Assembly: GCA_000708835.1 (NCBI GenBank)
Contig: DF237154.1
Span: 79,753-143,752, forward strand
DNA length: 64,000 nucleotides
From: Klebsormidium nitens
Lineage: Eukaryota; Plantae; Klebsormidiophyceae
Reading direction: 5' to 3'
Under the pieces are notes generated by a model, which did not search any database, was not told where the DNA came from, and saw nothing but the letters and a program-made list of their open reading frames with translations. A program made the position numbers and the translations under genes. The first letter of the stretch is position 1, and each line of letters opens with the position of its first letter. This document shows positions 11,710-34,700 of the stretch, one piece after another.

Positions 11710-14700
11710 ATGCTCACCCTAGCAGACATTCATAAGGCCAGGATTGTCGGCGATGGCGAAGAGATTGTCCTTCTTGGACATGTGAGTGGGCCTGTTCACT
11801 GCTTACAACTACACAGCTTTTATCCACAAAATCCAGAATTGGTCGAATTTTTCGCAGATACTGAATGTAAGTTGGTGATAGTCAAAGCTAAAGCGAAATA
11901 TTGTGGAAGTGGAGGAACTATTGCCATCCCAGAGGTTCCTGAGCTGTCAGCCAGAGTTTTTATTGCACCGTAGCTTGTTTGTTTTAAGCTTTCTTGCAGA
12001 TCCTGTGGCAGCTCCTCCTACTGCGACTCTATCTCGCTTGTGGGTACTGAAGGCGCAATTGTGGGTCTTAAGCAGATGCTGGGAGACTTGAACAATCCTG
12101 AGTCGCACGCAGTACAGGGTTTGAGCTCAATTTGTAGAGGAGGCGCCTCAAACGCTGATGGAGCTTCTTTATTGATCTTTCCGGACACCCTCAGCAGTTC
12201 CAAGCATTGAGCTTCTCATCTGGTTGAATGTTGTGGTTCATATGAGACGATATTTTCGCTTTCATTGGGGCAGTAAGTTTATCCTCTTGGCCACTCCGTG
12301 TGAGCTCATCTTTCCGGAGTGGATTTCCTTGACATCTCCAGGTCTTCCACACGTTCCGCTGTATCCCATTGGCAGAGACATATAACTCCTATTAATATGT
12401 GTGCCCTCATTTAAAAAATAATAACGTGACAGTAAAGTACGCAATGCCAGTCACTTCACTCTGCCCAATTAACGCCTTGTTCCGCCTGGGTGCTTTCTTT
12501 CTGGCTTTTGTGTTTCCCTGCAGGAACCTAGGCAACACGGCGTGGAGATTCGAAAGAAATTGCAAGAAATGCGACAATTTCACCTTTCATCTGTCTCGCC
12601 TTTCCTTCTTGAATCTGATTTTGACAAGCCCCCATTTCACAGGGCTTTGGCACAGACCAGACCGTGTGGCACAATCTGGAGCCCCTCCTGCTACGGCGTC
12701 GCTTCCGAGTCATGCTCTACAACCTGATGGGCCAGGGGACAGGTGTCCCCACCGGCTTCTCCAGCACATCTCTCGGCCACTCAGCAAACTCGAGGGTTTC
12801 GGTGGACAGCAATGGCTCGGACAGCCCCAAAGCGACGGGCAAGAAAGCCACCGCAATCGAGCGCGCGACCTCGGACGTGGCGAACGAGGAGTTTGAGCGG
12901 GAGCTCAAGGCGTTGCAGCTGTCGCAGCACGGTGGGGCCGGCGAGAGCCGACGGGGGATGTTTGGGAGGAAGATCAACGAGTCGTTCAGCCGGCTGTTCA
13001 CACGGAGCAAAAAGAAGAGCAAGGCCGGGGAAACGGCGGTGAGCGAGAAAACGCATGAGGAGGAACCGGTCGAGTTGCACCCGGAGGAGAGCGCCAACGG
13101 GGCAGCGTCCAAAGATCCGGAGTTCTCAGGGAGGCGGGATTTCAAGATTGAGGATCTTGACAGGGAGGGAGACGAGCGGCCTGAGCGGATAGACGAGGAG
13201 GAAACGGAAGGGATCGTGTCGGCCGAGGACTTCAACCATTCTCGGTACACCACACTGGACGCGTTTGCGGAGGACTTGATTAATCTTATGGACGAGATGG
13301 GGGTGAAGCAGTGCATCTATGTGGGGCACTCGGTGTCGGGCATGATTGGGCTGGTGGCGAGTGTCAGGCGGCCGGACCTATTCAAGAAGCTCGTGCTGCT
13401 GACGAGCTCCCCGAGGCAAGCCTCCAAGTTGTCCCCTTTGTTTCCATTATCAAAACTCACTAACGTGCTGAGCTGAGCTTGTATGGTTCGTCTTATCCTT
13501 CCTCTTGCTATCACTTGTCAAGGACCAGCAATGGGCGACTCGCTTTCAAGGAGTCTCTTGGGCTTGTCTCTGGTGTAGAGTATGAGGTAAGTGACAAAAG
13601 AGGTGTCATGCATGCAAGATCTGAGGAGAGGTCTTGGTCTTGGGCAGTTCGGAACGTCCTTCATTGTTTGATTGTACTGGACTTCTATAATTCTGAGGAG
13701 CAAGGTGCAAGACAGTGGATGGTCTTCTTCCCCCTACTCTGAGACTCGCAGCATGGTTCTTGTTGCGTCTTCTCTTTACTTACTTGTGAAATAGCTTGCA
13801 AGTGCTTGTATTCGACTTGATAAAAATCATTGACTCTGCATTGGGTGATGGTGCCAGCCCGTGTTGATTGATTGACTTGCTGCTCTTCTGGTTGAGCCAC
13901 CCGAATCTACTTTTCCAAAGATTGCTTAGCTACTTCCAAGGTACTGAGGTTGATTTCAAGTGCTTACTGACATACAGATTCGATGAGTGCTTCTTTGATT
14001 CATTGAAGTATTGCAGCTGCTGCGAGCTGGCAATCAGAAGACAGCACTAGTCTAAGGGTCAAAGTAAGGAATGTTATCCCCTTAAGAATCAAAGTCGCTG
14101 GCTGCCTTGAAAAGAGCAATTGTCTTGTGTCTTACTCTCTGCTTTACACTACAGTCACTGCAGCCGCTGTCTCCAGTGTGCATGAGTGTTGAGAGAGCTC
14201 CACAACTCGTTCTCTGTTCCCTGTCAAACCTCCTCTCATAAGCAGTCCCGCTCGGGAGAAGGTTCGCGTCCCCTTGATCTTGAGGTCCGCGCCCCCATTG
14301 TCTTTGCAATTTGTTTGTAACAAAACTTGCTTACGAATCTGGCTGGGGTCCCTCCTTTCCATGGTTCACGTATGGCTCACGTATGTGCACCTGCGCTGAG
14401 AAGTGTCCTTGTACTCTTCCTCCTCACGAGCGGCTACGGTTGTCATCTCCTTCCTCTTCTTAGCCGCCTCAGCTTCGACCTGTGGGTCCCGCTGTCTGCA
14501 GCCGTCGTTTTCCACTGCTTTTGCGTGTCTGTCGTGTCATCTTTGTGGCCTTGTCATTTGTTGTCCCGGGAGAAACACCCTTCTTCATCGTCCCTTAAAG
14601 TATTGCCAATTGTTTCCTTGTAGTGCAAGGGCGTGAGCCAGCTAGCCCTTCTTCCTTTTTCGCAGTGACACCTCTTTTTTTTCTCCAGGGTAAAGCTCAA

Positions 14701-15917: not shown

Positions 15918-17650
15918 GAGGGCGCACAGTCTGTTGAGCTCGACGGTCAAGCCCCGACAGCTACTCCAGAGCAGTTTTGCATCCAAAGTGCTGCCAGAAA
16001 TGGCCGTGCATGCTGTACGAGGCCGTTGAATGGACAGGTCTTTGGCCATGGAGTTCTTACTAAATTGATAGCTTGACATCAAGCAGCGAAGGCACTAAAA
16101 TTGCGGGAGATTGTGAGCTGTCAGTATACCCTGCTGTAATCGCTGAATGGAAGGAAGCGTTTGAGTATTTGTAAGCTATAGGTCGCGGTTTCCAATAATG
16201 TTGTTGAGGGATGTACTAACGTCTAGACTTGTCAGTCTCAGGAATAGGCATGATCTACCTGCGAGCGAGCGCCGCAAGACCCATTAGCCAACCATTAGAA
16301 CGAAAACAGTTTGAAACCGCTAAAAAGCAGTAAGTTCTGAATAGTTGAGACGACGATGGCCGGCATCCACACACAGACACGTAGACAGTGTGACTATTTA
16401 TCCATTATTATGAAGCCGCTGGACCGGCATATAAAATTGTTTGTTAGTTTATTTGACTGTGCATTTGCAAAGTATGAGGACATTGCACTCGAAGACTCAC
16501 ACGGCCGGCGCTTGTTGCTTTTGTATGAGAACTGATGAGCCGCGTGTGCTTAACTAGTTACTAGTTGCCGAATTGGCATGGCGCGCCCCATGGAATGATT
16601 GTAGCAAAGTCGCGAGACCGTCTTGAAATTTCTGCACTTGATTCATATCAAGTTCGGATCGATTTCCATGGATATTTTCAGAAGCGTTGCATGTATACCA
16701 AGCTAAAATGTGTACATATGTGGCTAGCTGTCCGCGATCCGATGATCAGGTCAGATTTCATATTTGGTGCGCGCACATGGCCAGACGCTTGGGTCGGTGC
16801 ACGACCGTTTTCTTATAATCCATGCTATCGACTCGAATGCGTGTTTTGCAAAAGCGGCAGCGCGCCCGGTGCTGTGCTGCATGCACGCAACTCGCTCATC
16901 ATGAGGGTCGGACTGCGGCCCTCCCACTAGAGACGACGAGCATAGCACACCATCTTCAAGATATGTACCTAGGTCGTCTGAACAACTGGCCCATCCTCAC
17001 TACGCGCTTTATTGGTCAACTGTGTGTTTGGCAGAGGATAGAAATGCAGTGAGAATGTTTGCCACCTATATGTACATTGCCTGCTCTTTGTTCCTTGGTT
17101 CAACTGTCGGTAAGTACGTTCGAGTCTTCTTTCGTATGTAAGTAGCATTCTGTACTGTTCGATCTACTATGTAGTCGCTGCACATTTAAGGATCTCGTTG
17201 AGTTTCTTTCCTTGAATGACTGACGGCACGTAATGCTGTGTGTTTGAATGTTGCTGTCTTCTGCGTGCAATGTGTCAGGAGCTGTGTCTGCACCGAAATG
17301 GATCCGTGAACTGCATCTGATCCTTGATGATGCACCCCGTGACGTCCTACTTTTGACTATGCTATTGGGGGATCCCCCTTGGAAAGATTGCGGTGTTACC
17401 TTGACTACCTGCGATGCAATACCTGAGCGGATCGATGCACATGTGACGACCAATCAAGTGCCAACCCCTACTATGTCAATCCCCACCCTTGACTAAATAC
17501 ACCCACCATTCTTCGTTACCGCATTGCTAAACAACCTTCCTTGGAGAGTCAGCCACGTTGAAATTGCCTTCTAGCTTTCTCATCGTAAGCATTAAATGGA
17601 CTCCGCCTCATGACCTCAACTCGAGATTTCAACGATGGGCATCAGTGACG

Positions 17651-20600
17651 TCACGATGGCATCGAGCGTGGTTTCGGCGGGCAGCCCCCCATCTCGAGAT
17701 CCGCCATTTCGGAGATCGCTGGTGCCCCCGGTTCGCTTCGTCGTTGCCGGCTTAGCAGCTTTTCGTCCAGGGAACTCTTCCGCAATTTGCGGACCATGTC
17801 CCGGGGGCTGACCCGGCTTCTCGGCGGGCCCGGCGACTGCGAGCGGCGGGTGCGGGTCGCCTCCTTCTGGAGGAGCGCGGTCGGGGTAAGCAGCGCAACC
17901 GGCGACACGAGCGCGGCCGCCTCCGCCTGGTCCAGGCGCGCGCGTGCCATTTCTTTGATCATCGAGTGCAGCTTCTCCGCGTTCAGGGGCTTACTGGAGG
18001 GGGGTGGAAGCGAACAGCCGTTGGATCTCTTTTCTCGAAGGGACGTTTGTAAACGAAGCCGTCAGCCTTTCAACCCTGTTCGTAAGTTGTGCAGCTTGCG
18101 ATTGGATGACAAAACACATCAGATCGGCGCTTCCATCACACAAGATCCAAGTTGCGTTACATAAAGCGTCCCTTTCATTTGAATTGGAGCCCGGGTTCTC
18201 TAACCCCTCGTTTGAGGCCCCTTGTGTGTTGCATTCTTCCGTGGCAGAGAGGCTCTCTTGTGGCACAGCAGGGTGACGTAAGCCCATCTTGACCTCCTCC
18301 GGCTGTGGCTTACCACTCTCGTGGCCATTACATACCGCTGTCTAGAGAAACCCCTTTTCAACCACAAGTCTTGACAGCTCGGCCCCCTCAATTCCTGACA
18401 CCCTCGCACCCACCTGATGTAGGCGTCCATCCCCAGCGCGAGGCAGCGCTCCGCGTCGCCGGACATGGCGTGTGCCGTCATGGCCACGATCGGCGTCGGC
18501 CGGCGCTGCAGTCGCAGCTCCCACGCACGGATGGCGGCGGTCGCGGCAAACCCGTCCATGACCGGCATTTGGACCTGGGGGTTAAGCGAACCGATTAAGC
18601 CATTTGTATTTGGGCCAGAAGCAAGAACGAAAAACAAAGTCCAACCGGAGAAGTAACAGGACGAGTACCTTTCAATGAAAGACTGACGTGATTCACTAAT
18701 CCCAACCGACCGGGTTCCGAGCAGCACATCTGACGGGGAGAGAAAGCGAGACTGTGAATGCAGGCCGGATTAGCTACCAGCGAGGAAATCGATCCGACGG
18801 CTTACGTCCATGAGAATGAGATCGAACGGCTCCTTTTCGACCATATCGACGGCTTCCCGCCCATTTCCCGCCAGCTTCAACGTATGGCCCCACTTCGTAA
18901 GTAGCGCGGTCGCCACTTTCTGGTTCACCGCATTGTCTTCGGTGACCAACACGTGCAGGCTGCCCCGCAAGGGGGATCCCCGGGGCGCTTTTCGCGCCGG
19001 GGGGGTGAGCCCCGTGGAACCGGTTTGCCCGATCGCGGCGTGCACCGCGCGCAACAAGCTGTCCTCTTTGATGGGCTTCGCGCAGTGGCCCTGCGCGAGC
19101 GGCGTTAGAAAGCTTCAAACAGCCAGGACAAAGGAGTCTCGCTTCTGCTTTCTTTTCCATCAGCAGTTTGCATTCTCTCGACTGTACGCTTGACAGGCTA
19201 AGATTGTGCGCGAGCGAAGTGCCCACCTGCACCTGCAGCTCGCGCATCCTTTCCGCGTGCTCGGCGGCGGACAGCGCTAAGGTCAGCGCCACGACCGCCG
19301 TCTTCGCCAACAACACCGGCGCCTTCTCCCTGACGTCAGCAACCATGTCGAGGCCCCCCATCCCAGGCATGCAGACGTCAGCCAGCACAAGCCGGAAGGC
19401 CCTCCCCCCTTTGGCGGCGGAGTGTAACGCTTCTATGCCGGCGGGGCCGGACGTTACGACCGTGGGTGACATGCCCCAGGATGCGGTCATACCGCCCAAG
19501 ATGCGACCGCTCGTGACGTTGTCGTCCACGATCAAAACCGGCAGTTTCTGCGGGGATAGATTTCCTGAATCAGTAATTGACGTACTCAAATCCGCGTTGC
19601 AACCACAGCTCTTGTGCTGTCCAAACATATAGGCGGAAGTCTGGTCTAGCTCTTACATTGGTCATGTGCGGTTTTCTGTGCTCTGGGTCTTCGGGCCAGC
19701 AGTCTTCAGAATGTTTCTCCTTCCAATCTGACCCTTTCTGTAGATGGGAGCGGTTATAGATTTGATAAAGCTTGCAAATTTCGGATCTGACTGAGTACAG
19801 CTAGCTGCGTGATCTTCCCATCTCGCACAAAGCCACCGAGATAGGAGGCTGTTTGCTGTTTCCAGCTCACACCACGGTTTCTCGCACCTTACCTCTCTTC
19901 TGAAAGACAAAAGCTAACAGTTACAGAGTGTCCTGGACGCTCAACTTCGAACTTCGAGTTCAACCTCAAATCTGAAACCTCAGAATTTCGTTGCAGATCG
20001 CCGACTCGATCCTCTCGGAAGGATTTTTTCAGACCTCCCACCTCAGCGTTCTAAGATTCAACAAAAAAGAGTCAATCACTGCAGGTATGAAGCCGACCGA
20101 CATTCAGCGACTTCTGCGCGCGCGCGCACCTGGAGCGCCTCGAGCATTGCCGCGGATCGCTTAGCTGGCGGCGTATCGCTGAGCTGGAAGACGGCGGTGA
20201 ACAGAAAGTTGCTGCCCTGCCCCTCGTGCGATTCCACCCACATGGACCCCGCCATTGAGGCGGCCAGCTTGGCGCTGATAACTAGACCGAGCCCGGTTCC
20301 GCCGTACACGCGGGTGGTGGACGAGTCCACCTGGGAGAACGGACGGAACAGCAGCGACTGCTTCTCCAGCGGAATGCCAATGCCTGGACGGAAAGAAAAG
20401 GGGCGCGTTCAAACATAAATCAAGTCACAGAGAATAGGTAAGATCTGGATGAGCGGAAGCCCTCGAGGGCTTGGGGCGCCTGTACACATTGAGCCGTTTC
20501 AACTTACGCCGTGTAGTTTGAAATGCTCTAGCAGATGTCGTAAGAAGCCTTTCCAGCCTGTTGTTGAACATGAAACAAACCCACAGTGCGACAAGCTCTT

Positions 20601-23600
20601 CGGGAAGAGTTCTCTTTGAGACCGTACAAAGTGATCAACTTTATCTTGCATCGACTGTCTCCGAGCCGAATGGAAAACTGTGAGACCTGAACTGCCCACC
20701 ATGCTTTTGCTAGGCATCCCTGGCGAAGCTTTCAGGAAACAACGCGTAAGACTTTCATCCGAGATGACAACGGACGTTTTCAACATTTTTGTCGCTCTTC
20801 ATGAAGCGAAAAGCATGTTTCTAAAAGTACTGATCGTGGGCGCGCGCACCTGTGTCTTTGACGGAAAACTTGAGGCCGATCTGTTGCCCGTCTCCGGAGA
20901 TACTATCCAAGATAATGCTCACGAGCACCTCGCCGTGGTCCACGCCAGGGGCCGGGGTGAACTTGATCGCGTTGCCTGTTCATGAATAAGGTGTTATATC
21001 ATTGCCTTTTCCCTTCATCCAAGGTCAAACCCGTATGATCGGATTCTATTCCCCGACCAGACCTTAGACTGTATTGCATCGGGGCCTCGAAAAAGGGTGT
21101 TGTCTGCTTAGACGCATAAGTCATCTTACGTGAGACACCTGTCCGACCTTCTGGACACTCACAGACAAGACCAAGATCCGAAACAGCCGCCACGTGTCGG
21201 CTTAACGACCGGGTCGAATTGACAAACTACTCAAAGGTCTACCGATGACATGTCCTAAAACAGCCGCCCCGGGTCGCCCACAAGAACCGGTTGACGAGAT
21301 AACCCCACTCACCGATCAGGTTGACGAGGATCTGAAAGAGCCGCCCCGGGTCGCCCATGAGGTTGTCCGGCACGTCTGGCGGCACGTCGACGATGATCTC
21401 CACGTTGCGCCGGCACGCGCGCACAGCCAGCACGGTGGTCGCCGCCTCTAGTTGGTCGCGCAGGCTGAAGCCGACGCGCTCCAGCTCCAGCTTCTCCGCC
21501 TCGATCTTGCTGAAGTCAAGGATGTCCTGCGGAACGGCGGAATGGCGGACGGAGTGGTTTGGAGTGATAAAACATCTCGAAGTTTTGGTGCTCCTTCAAA
21601 GAAAAGTTACAAAACTCGAAGTTCATTCATGCAAGGTGGGGGACGTGTTGAAGGGTGAAACGGATTTCTGAAACAAGCAGATTGCTGCTATTTTACAACA
21701 GTTTCTGAAGGCCTTGTGAAAAAGCTGAACGTCGATGGGGACGTGTGCTTCTATTACAGATTATTTAGTTCAAGTGGCTTGCATCTCGGAGGATGATGCA
21801 AACGAGAGCGAACAAAAAACCAAGGTCTCCTCTCAACAATTTGACGAGCCAATTACCATTTTTAATGTAATTATCTAATTCTATTGAGCATCTCTAAACC
21901 GTCGTTGACCACATCGTTTGGAAAATTGATGCAACCCCAACAGGTGCTCTTCTGTTGAAGACCAGCGCTGGTCGTAACATGGTAAGCAGGTTGCATTGGC
22001 CTTACGTTGATGACGTTGAGAAGGTGCTCCGCGGAGAATTTGACGAGCTCCAGGTACTCTTGCTGCTCCGCGTCGACGTGGGTCTCCAAACACAGCTCTG
22101 AGATGCGAGAGAAACGCCGGCAATCAGGCTGCTGAGCATGCTTTTTGGAAGTAGCTATCCAGTAACAAGCGTCTTGGAACACGCTCCAAGTAAGAACAGC
22201 GCATCTTCTCAGTTTCCAATTCAAAGTTTCTGCCTCCGCCGGCCATGGCAGGAATCTGGTGAGTCCCCAGTCCCCTATACAATCTGACCCGAAACGACGA
22301 AACGCCCGAGGATCAATCCAACATAACAAACATAAAGGCCGCCGGGCATTGCCAACGTCATTCGCCTGAGATGATCTGAAGCCTGGCTGCTCTTTTCCAG
22401 AGGAGAAGAAGGCTTACCGGTGCAATTGATGATCCCATTTAGAGGTGTCTGCAAAACAAGAAGAAGTCTGTCAAATCTTTCTCGAGATCTGGGCTTGCGT
22501 TTTGAAGACCCTCAGAGGAGGATCTTACTTACCACAAACACGCGCTTGTGAAATACGGACACATTTGTCAAAGCGGCCGGACCTCTGTCTTCCTCCTTTG
22601 AATCTATCCCAAAAGGCCGGGCTTGCGGCCCAGTAGCGGCCCGCTCGCGCGCGCGCGCGCGCTCACCCGTATTTCGTGGCTCATGTTGGCGAGGAAGTTG
22701 GACTTGATCTTGTTCGCGGACACGGCCTCGTCTTTCGCATTCACCAGCTCCGCCTGCGCGCTCTGCCGCGACTCGATCTCCGCGGCCAGGTCCGCGTTCG
22801 CCCACATCAGGTCGCGCGTGCGCTCCTCGATCCTGCGCGGAACGACGCCGTCGGTCTAACTTAAAAGAAACAACCAAGCTCGGACTTTGGAGCAGAAAGA
22901 GAGATAACGGAGAGTTGCTTCAATCTTCTTTGGCCTTCGATGCCTGGATGATCAGCATCCAAACCCAAAGAAGCTCTAGTTACTCTTATTTTTCATCACT
23001 TCACCTCTAAAGAGAGACTGTGTGGACAGATGCGGAATTATGTCACTCACACACGTTGTGCAGATTTGAAAGTGCACGTACTGGAGCTGACCCTCTGCAT
23101 TTGTTGCAGCTAGTCTGGAAAGATGAGCAATCTACTTAGCCGATGGTCCCATCAACTCAATGCCAATGCTAACAGCAGGTTTTCTTCTGCAAGATTCAGA
23201 GCGCGCGTGTTCTTACCTGGACTCGAGCGTACTGTACAGCTTAGCCATTTGCTCCGCCATCTCGTTAAACGTGTTCCTCAGGCCCCCGATCTCGTCGTGC
23301 ATCTCCCAGCTCGCGCCCTTAGCGCGCGCGGACAGGTCCCCGTCCGCGAGCGCGCGCGCCACCTTGTCGAGCTTGGTGATGGGCGCCGTGAAAATGCGCG
23401 AGAGGAGGTACGACGCGCAGATCCCGAGCGCGAGCACGCAGGGGACCGTCGCGAGGATGATGGTGCGCATGTGGTGGATCGCGCCGTAGGCCTCGCTCGC
23501 GTCGATCTTAGCAACGATGCCTGCGGGAAAAGGGCAATGAAGTCTGAATACAAGGGCCGCGCCGGCCGAAACTTGCGACCGGAAGCAATAGACTGTAAGC

Positions 23601-26429
23601 TCAACCATCTCTGGGTGCTGAAATGCTCATTGCAGCGACCCAATGCGGCCTCGAGAACCGCGGTGACTGAACTTTTTGTAAAAAGCCTTTTGCGTCAGGA
23701 CAGACGTGGGTTTAGTAAAGATCAGAAAAGATGTACTTTCGCGGGAAAGGTTCCTCACCCCACTCGAGGATCCCAAGCGGCGCATATGCTGCCGCGACGA
23801 CCTTGCCCCGGTAGTCCTTCTCGTTCTGGAAGCCAGTCTTGTTCAAGATAGCCTGCACGAGTCCAAGTTCTCTGTCATCAGTCTGCAAGCCCTCATTCTC
23901 GTTTGAGCAGGTTGCCATGAAAAGGCGCGCAGAATTGGCCCACAGCGGAGCGTTGAAAAGTCTCTTCACAGTGGGTTTTCGATGTTGTAAACCTCCAATC
24001 TCGTTTCTGTGTGGCCGCTGATGTCTGCTAGCTTTCCGTTGCCCATTCCACAATTCCTGGTGCACACAAATCCTTGCATCATCAGTCGAATCCGGAGCAC
24101 CCGCTTCTGCACCAAGCGTCAACCCCGCAAGCACAGCAATCTTGAAACTTGACAACAACGATCATGCGTTGAACTGCTCAAAAGGCGCTGCGGAAATGTA
24201 GATCATGTATTCCCGAACGTACTAAACAAACTGCTTTGCCGCGGACTCGTTTCGCCCTAGCTCGCCCACCTTTTCCAGCGCCCGATCGGACTGCCACGGC
24301 TGCACGTGCGGCGCGAGCGGGTCCCGGCTGGGGGGCAGCACGAGGCGCAGCGCCCCGGTGCCCGGGTCGACCACCCCGAGCAAAACCTCCCCCGTCGACT
24401 GCAGCCCCACCCCGTCCAGAACTAGATCGTGGAACTTTTTCGCGTCCAGCGTCACGTGCACGTACCCGATCACGACGCCGCTCCCGACCGGGAAGATGAT
24501 GGGCGCGCTGGCGGTCAGGACGAGCCCCCGGGACGAGTTCACCGGGAGCGAGAACGGGGTGACGTCATCAAGGATGGCGTCAGCGGCAGTGGCGTTGGAC
24601 GTCCTGAGCAGGGCCGTGCGGTTGGCGTCGTAGATGACGATCGAGCGGACGTCCGGGAGGACCGACGCGGCGGTCCGTAAGTCGTTGACGCCCACCTGGG
24701 GCGGGGCGAAGCCATGTCGGAGGAAGAAGAAAGACTCCAGCTCCGTACAAACCTTATCGGATGGGTTCGATTGGCCCCTGTTTGCAAAAGGCCTTGAAGC
24801 TTGCGTTTTGCAGGTAAGCTCCAAACTGAGTGACCAAGACGACGAAGTGGGAGGCTGGTCCTTCACCCTCGCACTTCCTCCGGTACAACTTGACCTGCAA
24901 AGTGGAACAACGGAAAAGCATAGGTCGCGTCTTATCCAAGTATCAGGAAGCGGTCTGCCCATCGAGGAAGTTGCCCGCGCGTATCGGACGCTGACCTGGA
25001 CGTCCGAGGAGCCGAGGGTATCCCCCGAGTTGTGCCGCAGGAGCAGCGCGTTTATAAGCACGCGCGTCGCGATGAGGTTTAGGTTGTCGGCTTCGCTGGC
25101 GAAGTAGTGCAGCACCTCCTGCTGACGCAGCGTGACGACCGTCGTCAGCCGCCGCTCGATCTCGCTGTCAATCACCTTCTGGCTGTTGAGCCTGCGGGAA
25201 AAAAGGAACAGCGGTGATCAAATTTCATTCTTTTGGAGAATGAGGGTCTGCTCCTTAGCGCCAGGAGAAATATCCGCCGACAATGGTGGCTGACGTAGCG
25301 GTGTGCTTTTGGGGTATTGCAAATGGAGAATGGAAAATGGGGTAGCTAGCACAAAAGCTGGGTAAATCACAAAGGGCCCTCGTCTAGGGCCTTTGATTTT
25401 AAAAGGGTGAAAGTAAGCAACAACAATAGTGCTTCTCAAGGGGAGGTTGAGTCCAGCAATAATTATCTTCCCATCACACAAGGAACCCTGCCGGAGTAGG
25501 GCGGTGGTATGCTGTTCTCAGGATGGCTTGGTTGCTTGGAACAGTCACCCTTCGGAGCGCCTACTAAGTGCCCCTTACAAGCGCCATCCAGCAGCGGCTG
25601 AGCTCTGTCGCTTGTCCTCTTTGAAAAGGTATCCATCTCACAGATGATTTCTTGGACCCAAGACACGCAACGTGAACCACCAATTCGGAAAGAAGAGCTC
25701 GATGTAACTCTCGCGAACCTGACAAAGTTTGAATGAACCCCACCCATCACCAATGGACCAGACCTCAAGGAGTGCAAAACATTGGTCCTCATGACACCCG
25801 TCGAACAGATGCTCCATAAAGGTCGCACCCGCTGATGGGCGGACGCGCTTGTGCACTCACCAGAGGACGAGCGCCATGGACCCGGACGAGACCACCACGA
25901 GCACCGCGACGAACAGCGTCAGCTGCAGCGCGATCGAGAACGGCACGCGCTTCTTCCGTTTCGTGCCCAGGTCCAGCGATACCCCCGGCGCGGCCGTCGA
26001 CATCGCGCCTCCCCGCGTCCAGCTACGCCGAGCCCGGGTCCCGCGCTCCGACTCGGGTGCGCTCGCGCGCGGGCTGCGCGACTCCTGATGCCAGCTGCCG
26101 CGCGCTTGAGGATCATCGGAGGGGTGCTCTTCGTCGCTGGCCGGGGAGGCGGGTGTCTCGCGGGACAAACGGCTCGGGAAGAGAGCAAGCCGGGGGCGGG
26201 GCCGCACGGGGAAGGAGTGCGCTTCCGCGTCGGCACCGGAACGAGCGCCAGCTGGTTGCGCACTGCTCATTTCCTTCGGAGTTGTAGCTGAGGTCCTCTG
26301 ACCTCTCCTAAGATTCGGCATCTCCAGCTGTACGTCCGTTTGCATAACAAAGGTCTGCCCGCTTTCCAGGTTGACAGACGGCTCCGTGGGACTTCCCGCG
26401 GAGTCTGCGGTAGCTTCTTCTAGGGCCAT
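17651..26429 (-). CDS. Membrane hybrid sensor histidine kinase, TM-Cache-TM-HAMP-HisKA-HATPase_c-REC-REC, ~1193 aa. 15 exons: 26429-25861, 25191-24996, 24695-24270, 23852-23759, 23520-23217, 22832-22667, 22448-22418, 22097-22006, 21526-21313, 20975-20850, 20383-20130, 19547-19227, 19090-18806, 18574-18414, 17993-17651.
   Basis: H-box [20 protein letters not shown]; [10 protein letters not shown]; N-box [17 protein letters not shown]; G1 VKDTGIGI; F-box [22 protein letters not shown] (G2); two receivers (VLIVDD..VLAD..T..KP and VTEDN..ILMDVQMP..MTAH..SKP); HAMP segment [34 protein letters not shown]; two hydrophobic helices. All introns GT-AG; exon sum 3582 nt, in frame. The start codon is the least certain part. 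Confidence 0.92.
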
Positions 26430-27910
26430 CGCGGGCAGTCAGCGGTCCTCCCCAACTATAGTGTGCAACCCTCGTCCGAGGACATTATCCACACCATCGG
26501 CAGGTATGTCCTTGTGGACGTTTGGGGCTTTCGAAAAGCAACTCAATGTTTTGGTACGGGCCCTGCTTCCCAGTTGTAGATTGGTATTCCTGGGCCTTGG
26601 ACCTTACGAGTCTCACCCCGCTTTACTCACAAGGGCCGAAGTGCTCTGCAGGAGGCACAAGAAGACAGGCTTGCCCGTCAACCCGTCTTCAAGCTCTGAT
26701 TCGATGTCTTTTCGTGAAGATGCGAAGATTGGTTTAAGAGGTGGTGAGTCTCATTGTCTCAGTTTTGCAAAGGCAGTGCAGCATCCTTTTGGTTTCGCCA
26801 CAATGACTTCTGGCTTTGCTTTGTCTACGGCCCGGCTATGGAAGGACGCGCTGAGTCAGCCCAGGTGGCATTCTTCCAAGGTGCCTCCACACAGTGCCAA
26901 AGTGGACGATACCCCTGATTCTTAGGAATCAAACAAAAGCAGTGCCCATTTATAACGCGTTTGCAGCCCCGAAGTTAAGTCAACATGTTTATGTCTGAGA
27001 CCGCGCAAGTGGGCAAGTAGCTTGCTCACCTTTACTGAAGGATTGAGTGTAAGGCAGAGCCTCTGTGCAAAAGCAACTCGGTTTCACACTGATGCCCCCA
27101 TCCTTACTACGAAGTGGACGTCAGCAAAGACTCAATCTGCCGACTCGTTCTGCACGCTTGCATATGCGAATGTGTGGCTGCGTCCCATGCCTGTTTAAAC
27201 CAACCACCGAAAACAGCTTAAACGTCTTTGATCAGTCTAACTGACCATTGGCCTGTATGAAGGAGGCTGCTCTGCTCTGCAGGCTGTAGGTTCAGGAACT
27301 GTGACGCTTCCTTGGACAGTATTCATGATCGATCCTATGAGGAAGATTGAGGGCCAGGAAGTCAACCTCGCCTTGCCTGGGAAGTTCTGCGAGGTAATCT
27401 TGGAAACCCCTAGACTGCGCCACAACTATATTGAAATGGATATCAGAATCTGAGAATCTGATACACTAGACTTTGATTCCCTTCCCAAGCTGATACTAGG
27501 TGTTCGCATCACTCTAGTTCGCAAGATCTTAAGCACCCAGATGCGCCAGGTTAATTCTTTAACTGAAACTGAAGGGGACTATCGCATCATCTGACATGGG
27601 CCAGGCTTCCTGGCCACTCATATTGCAGCCTCGTCGTAATCGGAGGATTGTCAGATGCAATGATCACTGAGCACGTGTCTTCAAGCTACCTCGATTAGCC
27701 CATTGAGCAGCTATCATTGCGTCAGCATGTCGCGAGACCATGGCTTACGGTAAAGCTGGCACTGATCCAGCATTGCTCTTGCTGATAAACTGGTAAAGTA
27801 GGCAGCTATGCTTTCAACCCGTGGCAACATATGGCCGCGGGGCGCCACCGGAAGCAAATCAGTTAGGCAGCGATGCGCGCGCGATTCAGAGGTAACCCGC
27901 AACCACTGCG

Positions 27911-31700: not shown

Positions 31701-34700
31701 GACATCTGTGAAAGATACCACGGCGTGAAGCGAGCCAACTCTTGTCGCTGAGGAGGTAATTCCGAACAGCGATTCAGTACCGCATCTCACTCCTCCAAAG
31801 GTCTACTTTCAGTTGAACCCTTGCGCCTCCCTCACTTTGTCGTGCAGATCTTGTTTCTGCTTTACCACTACTTCGTGGCCAAGGAGATGTACAACGCGAT
31901 CCGCGTGTTCATCGCGGCGTATGTCTGGATGACCGGCTTTGGCAACTTTTCGTACTACTACGTGCGCAAGGACTTCAGCATCGGCCGCTTCTGCCAGGTC
32001 AGTCAGCATCTGATTGCAGCATATGAGGCAAAGGACACGGTTGTCCAAATCTAATCACTCGAACGGTTGTTGCCTCCGTTGATATCCTGTTAGACAGCCC
32101 CAGCCAACAAACAAAACGAGACTGACAGCTGCCTCGTTTCAGTTCGGGGCATCAACAGCTTGTGTACGAACGCGAATATGCTCACTCATGTGGCTCGGTA
32201 AGTCGAGCGGTAGCCGTTGCAGCAACCGTAGTTGTAACTCTTTGGGGATAAGGTGGTGAAGTCAGGCCAGAAAAAAGATGGAGAAAGCAGAACGGTACTA
32301 TGGCTGGCTTGTGCATAGCCAGTCGGACAGAGGAGGACAGGAGCTCCTCGCAACAAAAGAGAGGCAAATAATGTCAGCAACTTAATGTCAAGCATCCCAC
32401 ACTGTCTTCCTGGTTTTTGGAAGGTTGGAAAACTTCGTAGGTTGAAGCTCTTAATCATTCACCCGGATCAGCACAAGGCTTGCAATTGGAGAAATCTGGG
32501 GACTCGGGACTCGTGCGCCCTCGATTCCGCGGTACTTCAAAGCGGGTGGGGGTTCATCGAAACGTGAGTGATCACGTCAACCGTCACTCTCCTAACGACC
32601 CCTGGCTACTCCTGTGCGCGCAGATGATGTGGCGGCTCAACTTCCTGGTCTTCTTCTGCTGCGTGACGTTGAACAACGACTACATGCTGTACTACATCTG
32701 CCCCATGCACACGCTCTTCACGCTCATGGTCTTCGGCATCTGCGCCATCGGGGCAAAGTACAACGAGAACAACCTCGTAATCTACCTCAAATTTGCAGGT
32801 AGGGCTCGCTCCCTTCGCAATTCAGAGACATTTCCGCATGATCTGAATTCCGTTTATTACACACTGGAGGCGTAGCAGTAGCTGTATTTCTCGGTCTTCT
32901 CACTGGTCCCGTTCCGGCAACGCACTTGGTCGAACTCTGAGACTTGCCAAATGAATTCCCGTTCCTCGGGAAGAATCTGAATCGAGGCTGGCCAGCATTA
33001 CTTGGCGGCTAGCCGCTTGTTGGTTGAGAAAGACTGTCGCATACGAGCACGTCTTTGTCCCCAGAAAGGGGTTCGTTTACAGTGCTGATTCTGGTTCCTG
33101 GTATCCGCACGTGAGCTCCGCTTCGATCAACAATATCAGCGCGAGATTCTGCAGGGCCGTGCAAGATGTTACTCCCAACCGAATGGATTCTCCCTCAGAC
33201 CACTCTCTCAGAATCATCCGCTCCCCCTGTGCAGTGGCGGTCGCCGTCGTAATCGGTGTGTGGGAGATCCCCGGCATGTTCGACCTGCTTTGGAGCCCCT
33301 TCACGTTCCTGGTCGCATACAACGACCCGCGTCGCCCTAGTGATGACATCATGCACGAGTGGCGCTTCCGCTCCGGCCTGGACCGCTACATCTGGATCAT
33401 CGGCATGATGTATGCCTTCGGACACCCCGTGGTAAGGGCGCGATTCTGGAGTGGTAGGATTTAAGAGCCTGGAGGTTGAGGACTAGAGTGGGCGATTTGC
33501 CTGTGCGTTATCTGTATTTCCGCAGTTGCTACGATTAGTGGGAAAGTGGGGTGTTTTCTGCCTAGCATGGCCGTTTGTTTCTTGACTGCGAAGCCGATTG
33601 ACGTGAAACATACTACACGGCAGAGAAAATGCTGCTTCAGAAGCTAGAATGTCCACGCCGTACGATCAGCATTTCACTGCTCTCTGGGAAAGCGAAGCCT
33701 TTCTGTTGGCGGAGTGCTGGCTTGAGTAGCTCAAGAGTGTCTGAGACAAGCCGTACTGCGGGTATTTTTAAGTTGTTAGTGACTTTGTCGACTGGGCAGA
33801 GCATGTGGTCCGCAGCGGGCATGCTTTGAGGTTGTCGACGTTGCGTTCCGTGGGTTGCGAGTCAGCACCGGCGGAGCTCAAGCCTGGTCCCCTCTCCTGA
33901 GAAACACGTTCCGCTGTTTCGCCCTGCCAGCAGTCTTCTTTCCACTCAGCAGGATCGAGGGCAAGCTGCAAGAAGCAATTGACGAGCTGCAACGCGCCGG
34001 TTCGTTCTCAGGAGAGAATGTTTCGGCGATCCATGCTCAGCTGTATGCCTGACGGGTGCGGCGTGTTGGTGCGCAGGTGGAGCGGTGGCTGGAGCGATTA
34101 GAAGACCTCAAGAGCACCACCCGCCAAACAGTGCGGGCCGGCCTCACGATATCAGCTCTTGCGGTGAGCGATCACGGTTTCGATTCTCCTTAGGACATTC
34201 CCACCACTTGTGCTGCTATATGAAACTAAAACCTGGTTGTGATGACAGCGTATTTGAGGGTTTGAGTTCAATTCAAGTCGCACTTGCTCTAAGTAGTTCA
34301 TCTTTCAGTACGCCGCACTACCAAAGAGTCGCACCTTGCTTGGAACGCTCTCTCAACAAGCTCCTCGTGTCTAGTCGCTTCCAGGCTCCAGAATCGCCGG
34401 AGACATTTCTTACCTCGTGCTTCCAAACATTGCCTGTTTGCAGCCACACCTAACACCCCACCAATTCACTGAATCCTTCAACCGAAAAACCTTTCTTCAA
34501 CCTTTGACATATGGAAGTGCAAGTGCTCTTCTCCTCCAAATTGTTTGCGGCTTGTCACAGTCACCCTGCCTGACTCGCCTTCTAATACAGATTCCCTGGA
34601 TCTTAAAACCTCTGGCTTGCTGGTCCGCAGGTCGGATACTACTGGTACGTCGCGTTCTATTCTTTGGGCAAGCTGGAGTACAACAAGGTCCACCCTTACA

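Follow-up and report, generated by a model that had tools for sequence, protein, structure and literature searches.

Within a 64,000-nucleotide stretch of the Klebsormidium nitens genome (contig DF237154.1 of assembly GCA_000708835.1, positions 79,753 to 143,752; hereafter the window), the minus strand at 26429-17651 carries a 15-exon gene predicted to encode a hybrid histidine kinase. Judged from the sequence, it is highly probable that the following three statements hold jointly: the locus is a nuclear gene that functions in a Klebsormidium-type streptophyte alga and is under purifying selection; its product is a type-II membrane hybrid histidine kinase of ~1,193 residues with a glycosylatable sensor; and the gene belongs to a vertically inherited streptophyte lineage represented in Klebsormidium, the Zygnematophyceae, Selaginella and ferns. 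The encoded order is a cytosolic tail, a first transmembrane helix (TM1), an extracellular sensor of ~270 residues, a second transmembrane helix (TM2), HAMP, HisKA and HATPase_c domains, two receivers (REC1 and REC2) and a tail. Structural modelling of a homologue and sequence matches of the family identify the predicted sensor as a bacterial-style double-Cache (dCache_1-like) domain.

Accounts of two-component signalling in plants usually centre on receptors for cytokinin and ethylene and on those of the AHK1 type, and the present gene indicates that a further, complete bacterial-style type persists in Klebsormidium under strong purifying selection, with kin up to the ferns. Cache sensors have been described in streptophyte kinases before; the gene is a dCache-HAMP hybrid kinase of an uncharacterised family already contained in plant proteomes, and its main interest is that it gives access to an orphan plant receptor family, not that it is a new kind of system. 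Standard thermal-shift screens can reveal the defined small molecules to which dCache domains bind, which makes the family a practical means of finding a new extracellular signal in plants that diverged early.

Gene structure and selective constraint

Base-by-base reading of the junctions gave 15 exons separated by 14 introns, the number that a first-pass annotation made from the sequence alone had proposed. All introns are of the GT-AG type and the 3′ AG is mostly preceded by a pyrimidine-rich run. Exon phases agree across all 14 junctions, the summed exon length is 3,582 nt (1,193 codons and a stop) and there are no internal stops. In a six-frame reading of 17000-27000 every coding piece lay on the minus strand, to which all features of the gene given below belong. 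The peptide quoted in the first-pass annotation as the end of the sensor is real and spans the junction of exons 4 and 5 via a split Gly codon. For exon 4, the junction RALEK/AILNKTGF follows the A-x-x-x-A-[IV]-x-x-x-[TS]-G pattern of the homologues at every residue. The exon 3 donor was placed at 24269 (AAG/GTGGGC). Alternative exon 3 donors at 24228 and 24223 and an exon 4 acceptor at 23882 were rejected because homologues fit 24270/23852 without length change and conservation with the orthologue described below ends at 24264; an exon 12 donor after ELQ was rejected because of the spacing to the KP motif in homologues.

An orthologue was found on L001, a 15-kb genomic contig from another sample, which phmmer recovered as two fragments with ~80% identity to the sensor piece. 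In a blastn comparison of the gene with L001 the predicted exons aligned at 75–96% nucleotide identity and almost nothing aligned between them. All exons present on L001 were open and without stops. Three full-length homologues are also colinear with the gene over all of its exons, which, together with an orthologous contig that keeps just the exons, excludes chance as the origin of this exon series.

The ratio of nonsynonymous to synonymous substitution rates (dN/dS) against the L001 orthologue was 0.04–0.06 for the exons encoding HAMP, kinase, REC1 and REC2 (exons 5, 6, 8, 9 and 11 to 14), with single values of 0.04 for exon 5, 0.06 for exon 12 and 0.04 for exon 13; constraint on REC1 equals that on REC2. 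Values were 0.11 for exon 2 (stalk helix), 0.16 for exon 10 (N-box to G1-box), 0.17 for exon 4 (proximal sensor strands), 0.51 for exon 3 (distal sensor module) and 0.70 for exon 1 (N-terminal tail). The sensor exon thus evolves at roughly ten times the rate of the signalling exons, which is what the retuning of a ligand-binding surface would be expected to produce. Purifying selection, and relatives from Klebsormidium to ferns that follow the species-tree order, agree with the description of an old, integrated gene in the first-pass annotation.

Sensor, kinase core and receivers

Exon 1 (25861..26429; start codon 26429-26427) encodes a ~160-residue cytosolic tail rich in Ser, Pro, Arg and Ala, a basic patch (KRKKR) and TM1 at about 25946-25863 (exon 1 residues ~162-189; hydrophobic window score 2.0–2.5), the position to which TM1 of the homologues aligns. 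The exon 1 donor, GTGAGT, runs from 25860. The ~270-residue sensor lies between this helix and the hydrophobic helix of exon 5, with four N-x-S/T sequons between the two, and is predicted to face outward because the basic patch precedes TM1. Exon 2 (24996..25191) supplies the long N-terminal stalk helix, aligning to helix 1 of a modelled homologue; exon 3 (24270..24695) encodes the PAS-like module distal to the membrane together with the first part of the proximal one, and contains three of the N-glycosylation sequons; exon 4 (23759..23852) contributes strands of the proximal module. The final sensor strand is encoded by exon 5 (23217..23520), followed by TM2 (about 23470-23390, in-frame residues ~17-43 of the exon, placed by hydrophobicity) and HAMP (about 23407-23246).

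Pfam scans were run on single stop-free exon pieces of the window, and whole-protein analyses were carried out on natural homologues. The assignment of the sensor to the double-Cache fold is based on several comparisons of the latter kind. A bacterial metagenomic relative, P0049, scored 53.3 bits against dCache_1 (PF02743), above the gathering score of 45 bits. With a fern member as the query, bacterial dCache_1-HAMP kinases and a chemoreceptor matched the whole sensor and HAMP at E-values of 1e-31 to 1e-21 and 26–30% identity. A family profile (A1), which includes bacterial dCache-HAMP rows, matched the solved dCache sensors KinD, Tlp1, Mlp24 and McpH, and its HAMP part matched AF1503, NarQ and EnvZ-chimera structures. 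An AlphaFold model of residues 78-342 of the Mesotaenium homologue P0014 (pLDDT 92.7, pTM 0.88) consists of a long stalk helix and two PAS-like modules, and its 50 best Foldseek matches were all bacterial dCache domains. The solved sensors DvhD (9rc2), PctA (5t65), Tlp1 (4wy9), KinD (4jgo) and DctB (3by9) have the same stalk helix and two PAS-like modules; VIA-align superposed the model with Z scores of 15–19.5 and an rmsd of 3–4 Å over 210–240 residues, at an identity of 9–18%. The nearest clusters in the ESM Atlas were bacterial Cache/HAMP proteins, both by sequence features and by shape (TM 0.77–0.86). Window exons 2 to 5 align along the entire P0014 model, and exon 3 folded alone gave a PAS-like module (pLDDT 78.5) whose best, weak matches were dCache/PDC sensors. 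These homologue matches and structures, together with the HAMP match described below, uphold the proposal of a bacterial-style dCache sensor followed by TM2 and a true HAMP.

A CHASE sensor was excluded, being absent from both the Pfam and the structure matches: CHASE (PF03924) gave no match at E<=1 on the window pieces nor at E<=0.01 on nine homologues, and the AHK4 sensor structure was not among the 50 best structure matches of the P0014 model. The CHASE receptors AHK2-4 are hybrid kinases too and share the two receiver-type domains as well as an extracytosolic sensor that has two modules and belongs to the Cache clan, but the protein encoded in the window differs from them in having no CHASE match, in having HAMP and in keeping the phospho-acceptor Asp of REC1. 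The amino-acid-binding motif of dCache_1AA sensors comprises Y121, R126, W128, Y144 and D173 in PctA (PMC8915833). No Y-x(3-5)-R-x-W was found in exon 3, whose sole Trp lies near its end, in the proximal part; in this respect the sensor departs from PctA.

A separate observation concerns glycosylation of the distal module. In an alignment of full-length homologues (A2), an N-A-T sequon (N270/T272 in P0009) is invariant in all eight aligned zygnematophyte and fern sequences. The corresponding site in window exon 3, at about 24455-24447, reads D-A-K in Klebsormidium, and bacterial relatives are D-A-K/T-like. Judged from these residues, a glycan at the N-A-T site may be specific to eukaryotes and may have arisen once Klebsormidium had split off.

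HAMP (PF00672) was detected on exon 5 at 35 bits (gathering cut-off 25; E=1.9e-8; profile positions 1-51 of 53), directly after TM2. Exon 6 (22667..22832) continues with the signalling coiled coil and the H-box, in which the phospho-acceptor His codon is at about 22678-22676. Exon 7 (22418..22448), a micro-exon of 31 nt, extends HisKA helix 1; the L001 orthologue has the same 10 in-frame residues, and the motif is also found in the Selaginella protein P0043. HisKA helix 2 is encoded by exon 8 (22006..22097); the Pfam match to HisKA on single pieces covers only the start of the domain. Exon 9 (21313..21526) contains the end of HisKA and the start of HATPase_c up to the N-box (LVNLIG/N), exon 10 (20850..20975) the rest of the N-box (NAIKFT) to the G1 box (KDTG), and exon 11 (20130..20383) the G1 (IGIP), F (FRPF) and G2 (GGTGLGL) boxes and the end of the kinase, with a HATPase_c match of 52.8 bits (E=6.3e-14). 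All boxes of a class I hybrid kinase are therefore present, namely H (SHEIR), N (NLIG/NAIKF), G1 (DTG/IGIP), F (FRPF) and G2 (GGTGLGL).

Response_reg was matched on three pieces: exon 12 (E=1.5e-8), exon 13 (E=1.7e-8) and exon 14 (E=7e-7). Like those for HAMP and HATPase_c, these single-piece scores lie above or close to the respective Pfam cut-offs. Exon 12 (19227..19547) encodes most of the conserved residues of REC1, with the acidic pair in VDDN, the Asp at about 19379-19377 (LADVCMP) and the Thr in VVALT; exon 13 (18806..19090) encodes the REC1 end with its Lys (AKPIK), a linker and the first half of REC2 (TEDN), ending with the phospho-acceptor Asp of REC2 as its final codon (18808-18806). 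The middle of REC2 (VQMPVMDG to IVAMTAHA) is on exon 14 (18414..18574), and exon 15 (17651..17993; stop 17653-17651) adds the REC2 Lys (S-KPLN), the last helix and a ~95-residue low-complexity tail. REC1 thus keeps DD/D/T/K (VDDN, LADVCMP, VALT, AKP) and REC2 keeps ED/D/T/K (TEDN, LMD/VQMP, AMT, SKP), as the first-pass annotation had read them: acidic pair, phospho-Asp, Thr and Lys in each. No histidine phosphotransfer (HPt) motif was found in exon 15. Among PDB receiver structures, in which the plant histidine kinase entries are the AHK4, AHK5 and CKI1 receivers, REC2 was closest to a fungal-type receiver (128 bits vs 62–81 bits for AHK5, AHK4 and CKI1).

Family, descent and competing explanations

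An exhaustive phmmer search with the sensor exons of the window returned 15 proteins at E<=0.001 among 1.84 billion representatives, with matches in ferns and zygnematophytes, a chytrid and a bacterial protein. Full-length matches were obtained from Adiantum, Spirogloea and Mesotaenium as well as from transcriptome sequences, and further word-index searches added a second gene from Spirogloea, two from Selaginella and many paralogues from Adiantum and Ceratopteris; besides family members, these searches returned only bacterial kinases. Members of the family include Selaginella LOC9658361 and LOC9635761, Spirogloea SM000128S26243, Mesotaenium ME000202S02767 and Adiantum and Ceratopteris entries named 'histidine kinase'. 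The homologues have the Pfam architecture dCache_1, HAMP, HisKA, HATPase_c and Response_reg; in public protein sets the kin are often automatically annotated with dCache_1 and HAMP, and none bears a functional name. Given these relatives, the gene is no peculiarity of one alga, which does not support the framing of the first-pass annotation. All exons of the window gene align with the streptophyte kin and the architecture is equal, but the Klebsormidium protein branches first, is without the large REC1 insert of the zygnematophyte members, has D-A-K in place of the sequon that is invariant in the eight full-length homologues and shares only ~30% identity with its kin in the sensor.

One fern sequence departs from this pattern. 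P0004 (Adiantum nelumboides MCO5548017.1) is cut off after the G1/F-box region and continues without kinase similarity, in what looks like an open reading frame of foreign origin fused to it; the entry probably reflects disruption of a paralogue or an annotation error.

Two bacterial metagenomic proteins, P0048 and P0049, contain dCache_1, HAMP, HisKA, HATPase_c, two REC domains and HPt, and resemble the algal gene in the domain order from TM1 to the second receiver and in the sensor fold. P0049 aligned with Selaginella P0043 at 31% identity over 758 residues, from TM1 to REC1, and then at 40% over 188 residues through REC2. Because P0049 is colinear through REC2, and HPt alone is missing in the plants, the two-receiver layout was inherited with the rest of the protein and is not special. 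The algal gene differs from these bacterial kinases in lacking HPt and in having 14 spliceosomal introns, a disordered N-terminal tail of ~160 residues, N-glycosylation sequons in the sensor and a low-complexity C-terminal tail. Most likely, to judge by this alignment, the family descends from a bacterial dCache_1-HAMP-kinase-REC-REC-HPt gene that lost HPt and gained introns.

A tree of the TM2-HAMP region placed all streptophyte rows on one side of a branch (SH-aLRT 98), with the window inside the streptophyte clade. The order within the clade is that of the species tree, that is, the window, then Mesotaenium, a transcriptome and Spirogloea, then Selaginella and the ferns, which fits one old acquisition followed by vertical descent of the putative receptor gene.

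More tentatively, we propose that the family is a distinct streptophyte receptor lineage, apart from AHK1, CKI1, CHASE and ethylene receptors, which combines dCache, HAMP and two live receivers; that it goes back to one bacterial gene acquired before Klebsormidium split from the land-plant line; and that zygnematophytes, lycophytes and ferns retained it, with a possible loss in seed plants. If true, it would represent an orphan extracellular small-molecule receptor of early-diverging plants.

Several results weigh against parts of this interpretation. The exon 2 piece of the window scored only 13.2 bits against dCache_1 (E=0.066, profile positions 3-54), below the cut-off, and the streptophyte homologues, covering profile positions 2 to 238/240, were all sub-threshold as well (22–37 bits, E 4e-9 to 1e-4). 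The weak score of the window piece is explained by introns that split the domain, and the Cache assignment consequently rests on homologues and structure; of the profile scan proposed with the first-pass annotation, the HAMP match above cut-off and the lack of a CHASE match speak for the reading, and the dCache_1 matches of the homologues do so by their near-complete profile coverage, not by their scores. The fold evidence comes from the model of a homologue, not from the joined protein of the window, and the E-value of the matches to the lone exon 3 model was only about 2e-3. The TM2-HAMP tree is based on 100 columns and a quick search. No bacterial donor lineage could be named: the kinases that P0049 matched in GTDB genomes came from Chloroflexota, cyanobacteria and proteobacteria, and their similarity was mostly confined to the kinase half. 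L001 stops short of exon 15, which lacks orthologue support and is the least supported part of the gene. No listed sequencing run contains the gene stretch, and contigs of four runs labelled with the same species, compared with 20700-26500, gave just 19–39-nt conserved kinase-motif pieces from paralogous transcripts. Ligand binding, the direction of regulation, the route of phosphotransfer and the way in which REC1 and REC2 divide the work are, finally, deduced by analogy.

Homologues were found on intron-free 4–5 kb contigs in several sequencing runs, which suggests that family members are transcribed in those runs. P0009, the closest zygnematophyte-like homologue, for instance, occupies one uninterrupted frame of 1,165 codons on contigs of 4.1–4.5 kb (L002-L004; SRR8128903, SRR8128905 and SRR8128906).

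The relation of the family to AHK1 requires closer consideration. AHK1, poplar HK1a/b and yeast Sln1 have themselves been described as dCache_1 kinases (Upadhyay, 2016, PMC4822843; Makhokh, 2023, PMC10093795); the dCache_1 domain of AHK1-type poplar kinases was described and mutated by Makhokh (2023), who cited Upadhyay for AHK1. Because AHK1-type kinases have already been published as dCache_1 proteins, 'Cache' and 'AHK1 type' are no alternatives. The contrast with land-plant histidine kinases drawn by the first-pass annotation consequently survives for HAMP, which is absent from the published drawings of AHK1, HK1a/b and Sln1 (PMC10093795, Figure 1 legend), and fails for Cache. The gene could then be a Klebsormidium orthologue or co-orthologue of the AHK1/CKI1 osmosensor-type dCache_1 lineage that kept an ancestral HAMP later lost in land-plant AHK1, and would then fall within a plant clade that has been characterised already. 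The shared plan of a TM-dCache_1-TM ectodomain, kinase, receiver and HPt phosphorelay in AHK1, HK1a/b and Sln1 (PMC4822843, PMC10093795), the equal overall topology and the occurrence of AHK1-group members in K. nitens, as reported in PMC6324907, would agree with such an origin. We nevertheless consider it unlikely, a judgement made from published descriptions and search results. The exhaustive phmmer search detected no similarity to an AHK1-like sensor among the 1.84 billion representatives, though AHK1 ectodomains are reportedly well conserved across plants; the family is present as separate genes in AHK1-bearing lineages (Selaginella, ferns); both the sensor with HAMP and the full-length protein have more in common with bacterial proteins; and REC2 is nearer to the fungal-type receiver than to those of AHK5, AHK4 and CKI1. 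HAMP, the intact REC1 and closeness to bacterial proteins set the family apart from the AHK1 type.

Kabbara et al. (2018; PMC6324907) counted 67 kinases in K. nitens and mentioned neither Cache nor HAMP for the green lineage, and they described a group of 'NarX-like nitrate/nitrite sensors' with two members in K. nitens (KniteHK29 and KniteHK44), two in Selaginella and one in the moss Physcomitrella. This group may be the family described here, as the Selaginella count of two is equal in both. Were the two identical, the NarX label would not fit the fold, which is a two-module dCache, and would need correcting. That the gene is a K. nitens kinase of this group which senses nitrate through a NarX-type P-box domain is a different matter and very improbable. 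The topology of TM, sensor, TM and HAMP is equal, the Selaginella numbers coincide and TLRQQ in the stalk helix is faintly like the NarX P-box, but the sensor model is beta-rich and two-module instead of a four-helix bundle, the family profile matches NarQ in HAMP alone (positions 306-365), and no PilJ/NarX-type Pfam match was found at E<=1.

A decaying or silent relic, or bacterial contamination, can practically be dismissed: although the four runs yielded no transcript contig and the protein collections searched yielded no full-length annotated Klebsormidium protein with such a sensor, 14 spliceosomal introns and eukaryotic neighbours exclude contamination, the frame is intact in two genomes with strongly constrained signalling exons (dN/dS 0.04–0.06), and all catalytic residues are kept.

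Proposed signalling and genomic surroundings

The receptor lineage proposed here would signal as follows, with the domain order and the catalytic residues read from the sequence. By analogy with bacterial families, a small extracellular ligand, other than a PctA-type amino acid, would bind one of the Cache modules and displace the stalk helix and TM2. Through HAMP and the coiled coil, this displacement could alter autophosphorylation of the H-box His, from which the phosphoryl group would pass to the Asp of REC1, REC2 or both and then, via a free-standing HPt protein, to response regulators. Neither an HPt gene nor a response regulator gene adjoins the kinase gene.

The neighbouring genes in the window are eukaryotic. 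A KAI2-like alpha/beta-hydrolase piece is located on the plus strand at 12664-13476 (PF00561, E 7e-11). On the other side of the kinase gene, two open pieces on the plus strand at 32480-33464 match the Cas1p-type 10-TM acyltransferases (PF07779, E 1e-7 and 5e-5), which indicates a predicted multi-exon O-acetyltransferase-like gene.

Three observations were made in the non-coding parts of the locus. A 77-nt patch in intron 3 (24037-23961) is 73% conserved with L001 and the rest of that intron is unaligned; the patch might have a regulatory role or belong to an alternative exon that escaped recognition. A 44-nt patch at 26663-26620, which precedes the start codon by ~200 nt, shares 86% identity with L001 and possibly represents a 5′ untranslated region or promoter element. 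Introns 6, 10 and 11 (22666-22645, 20849-20839 and 20129-20114, minus strand) start with GTG and a (GC)n run (GTGAGCGCGCGCGCGCGCG, GTGCGCGCGCC and GTGCGCGCGCGCGCAG), an unusual donor-side feature common to the three.

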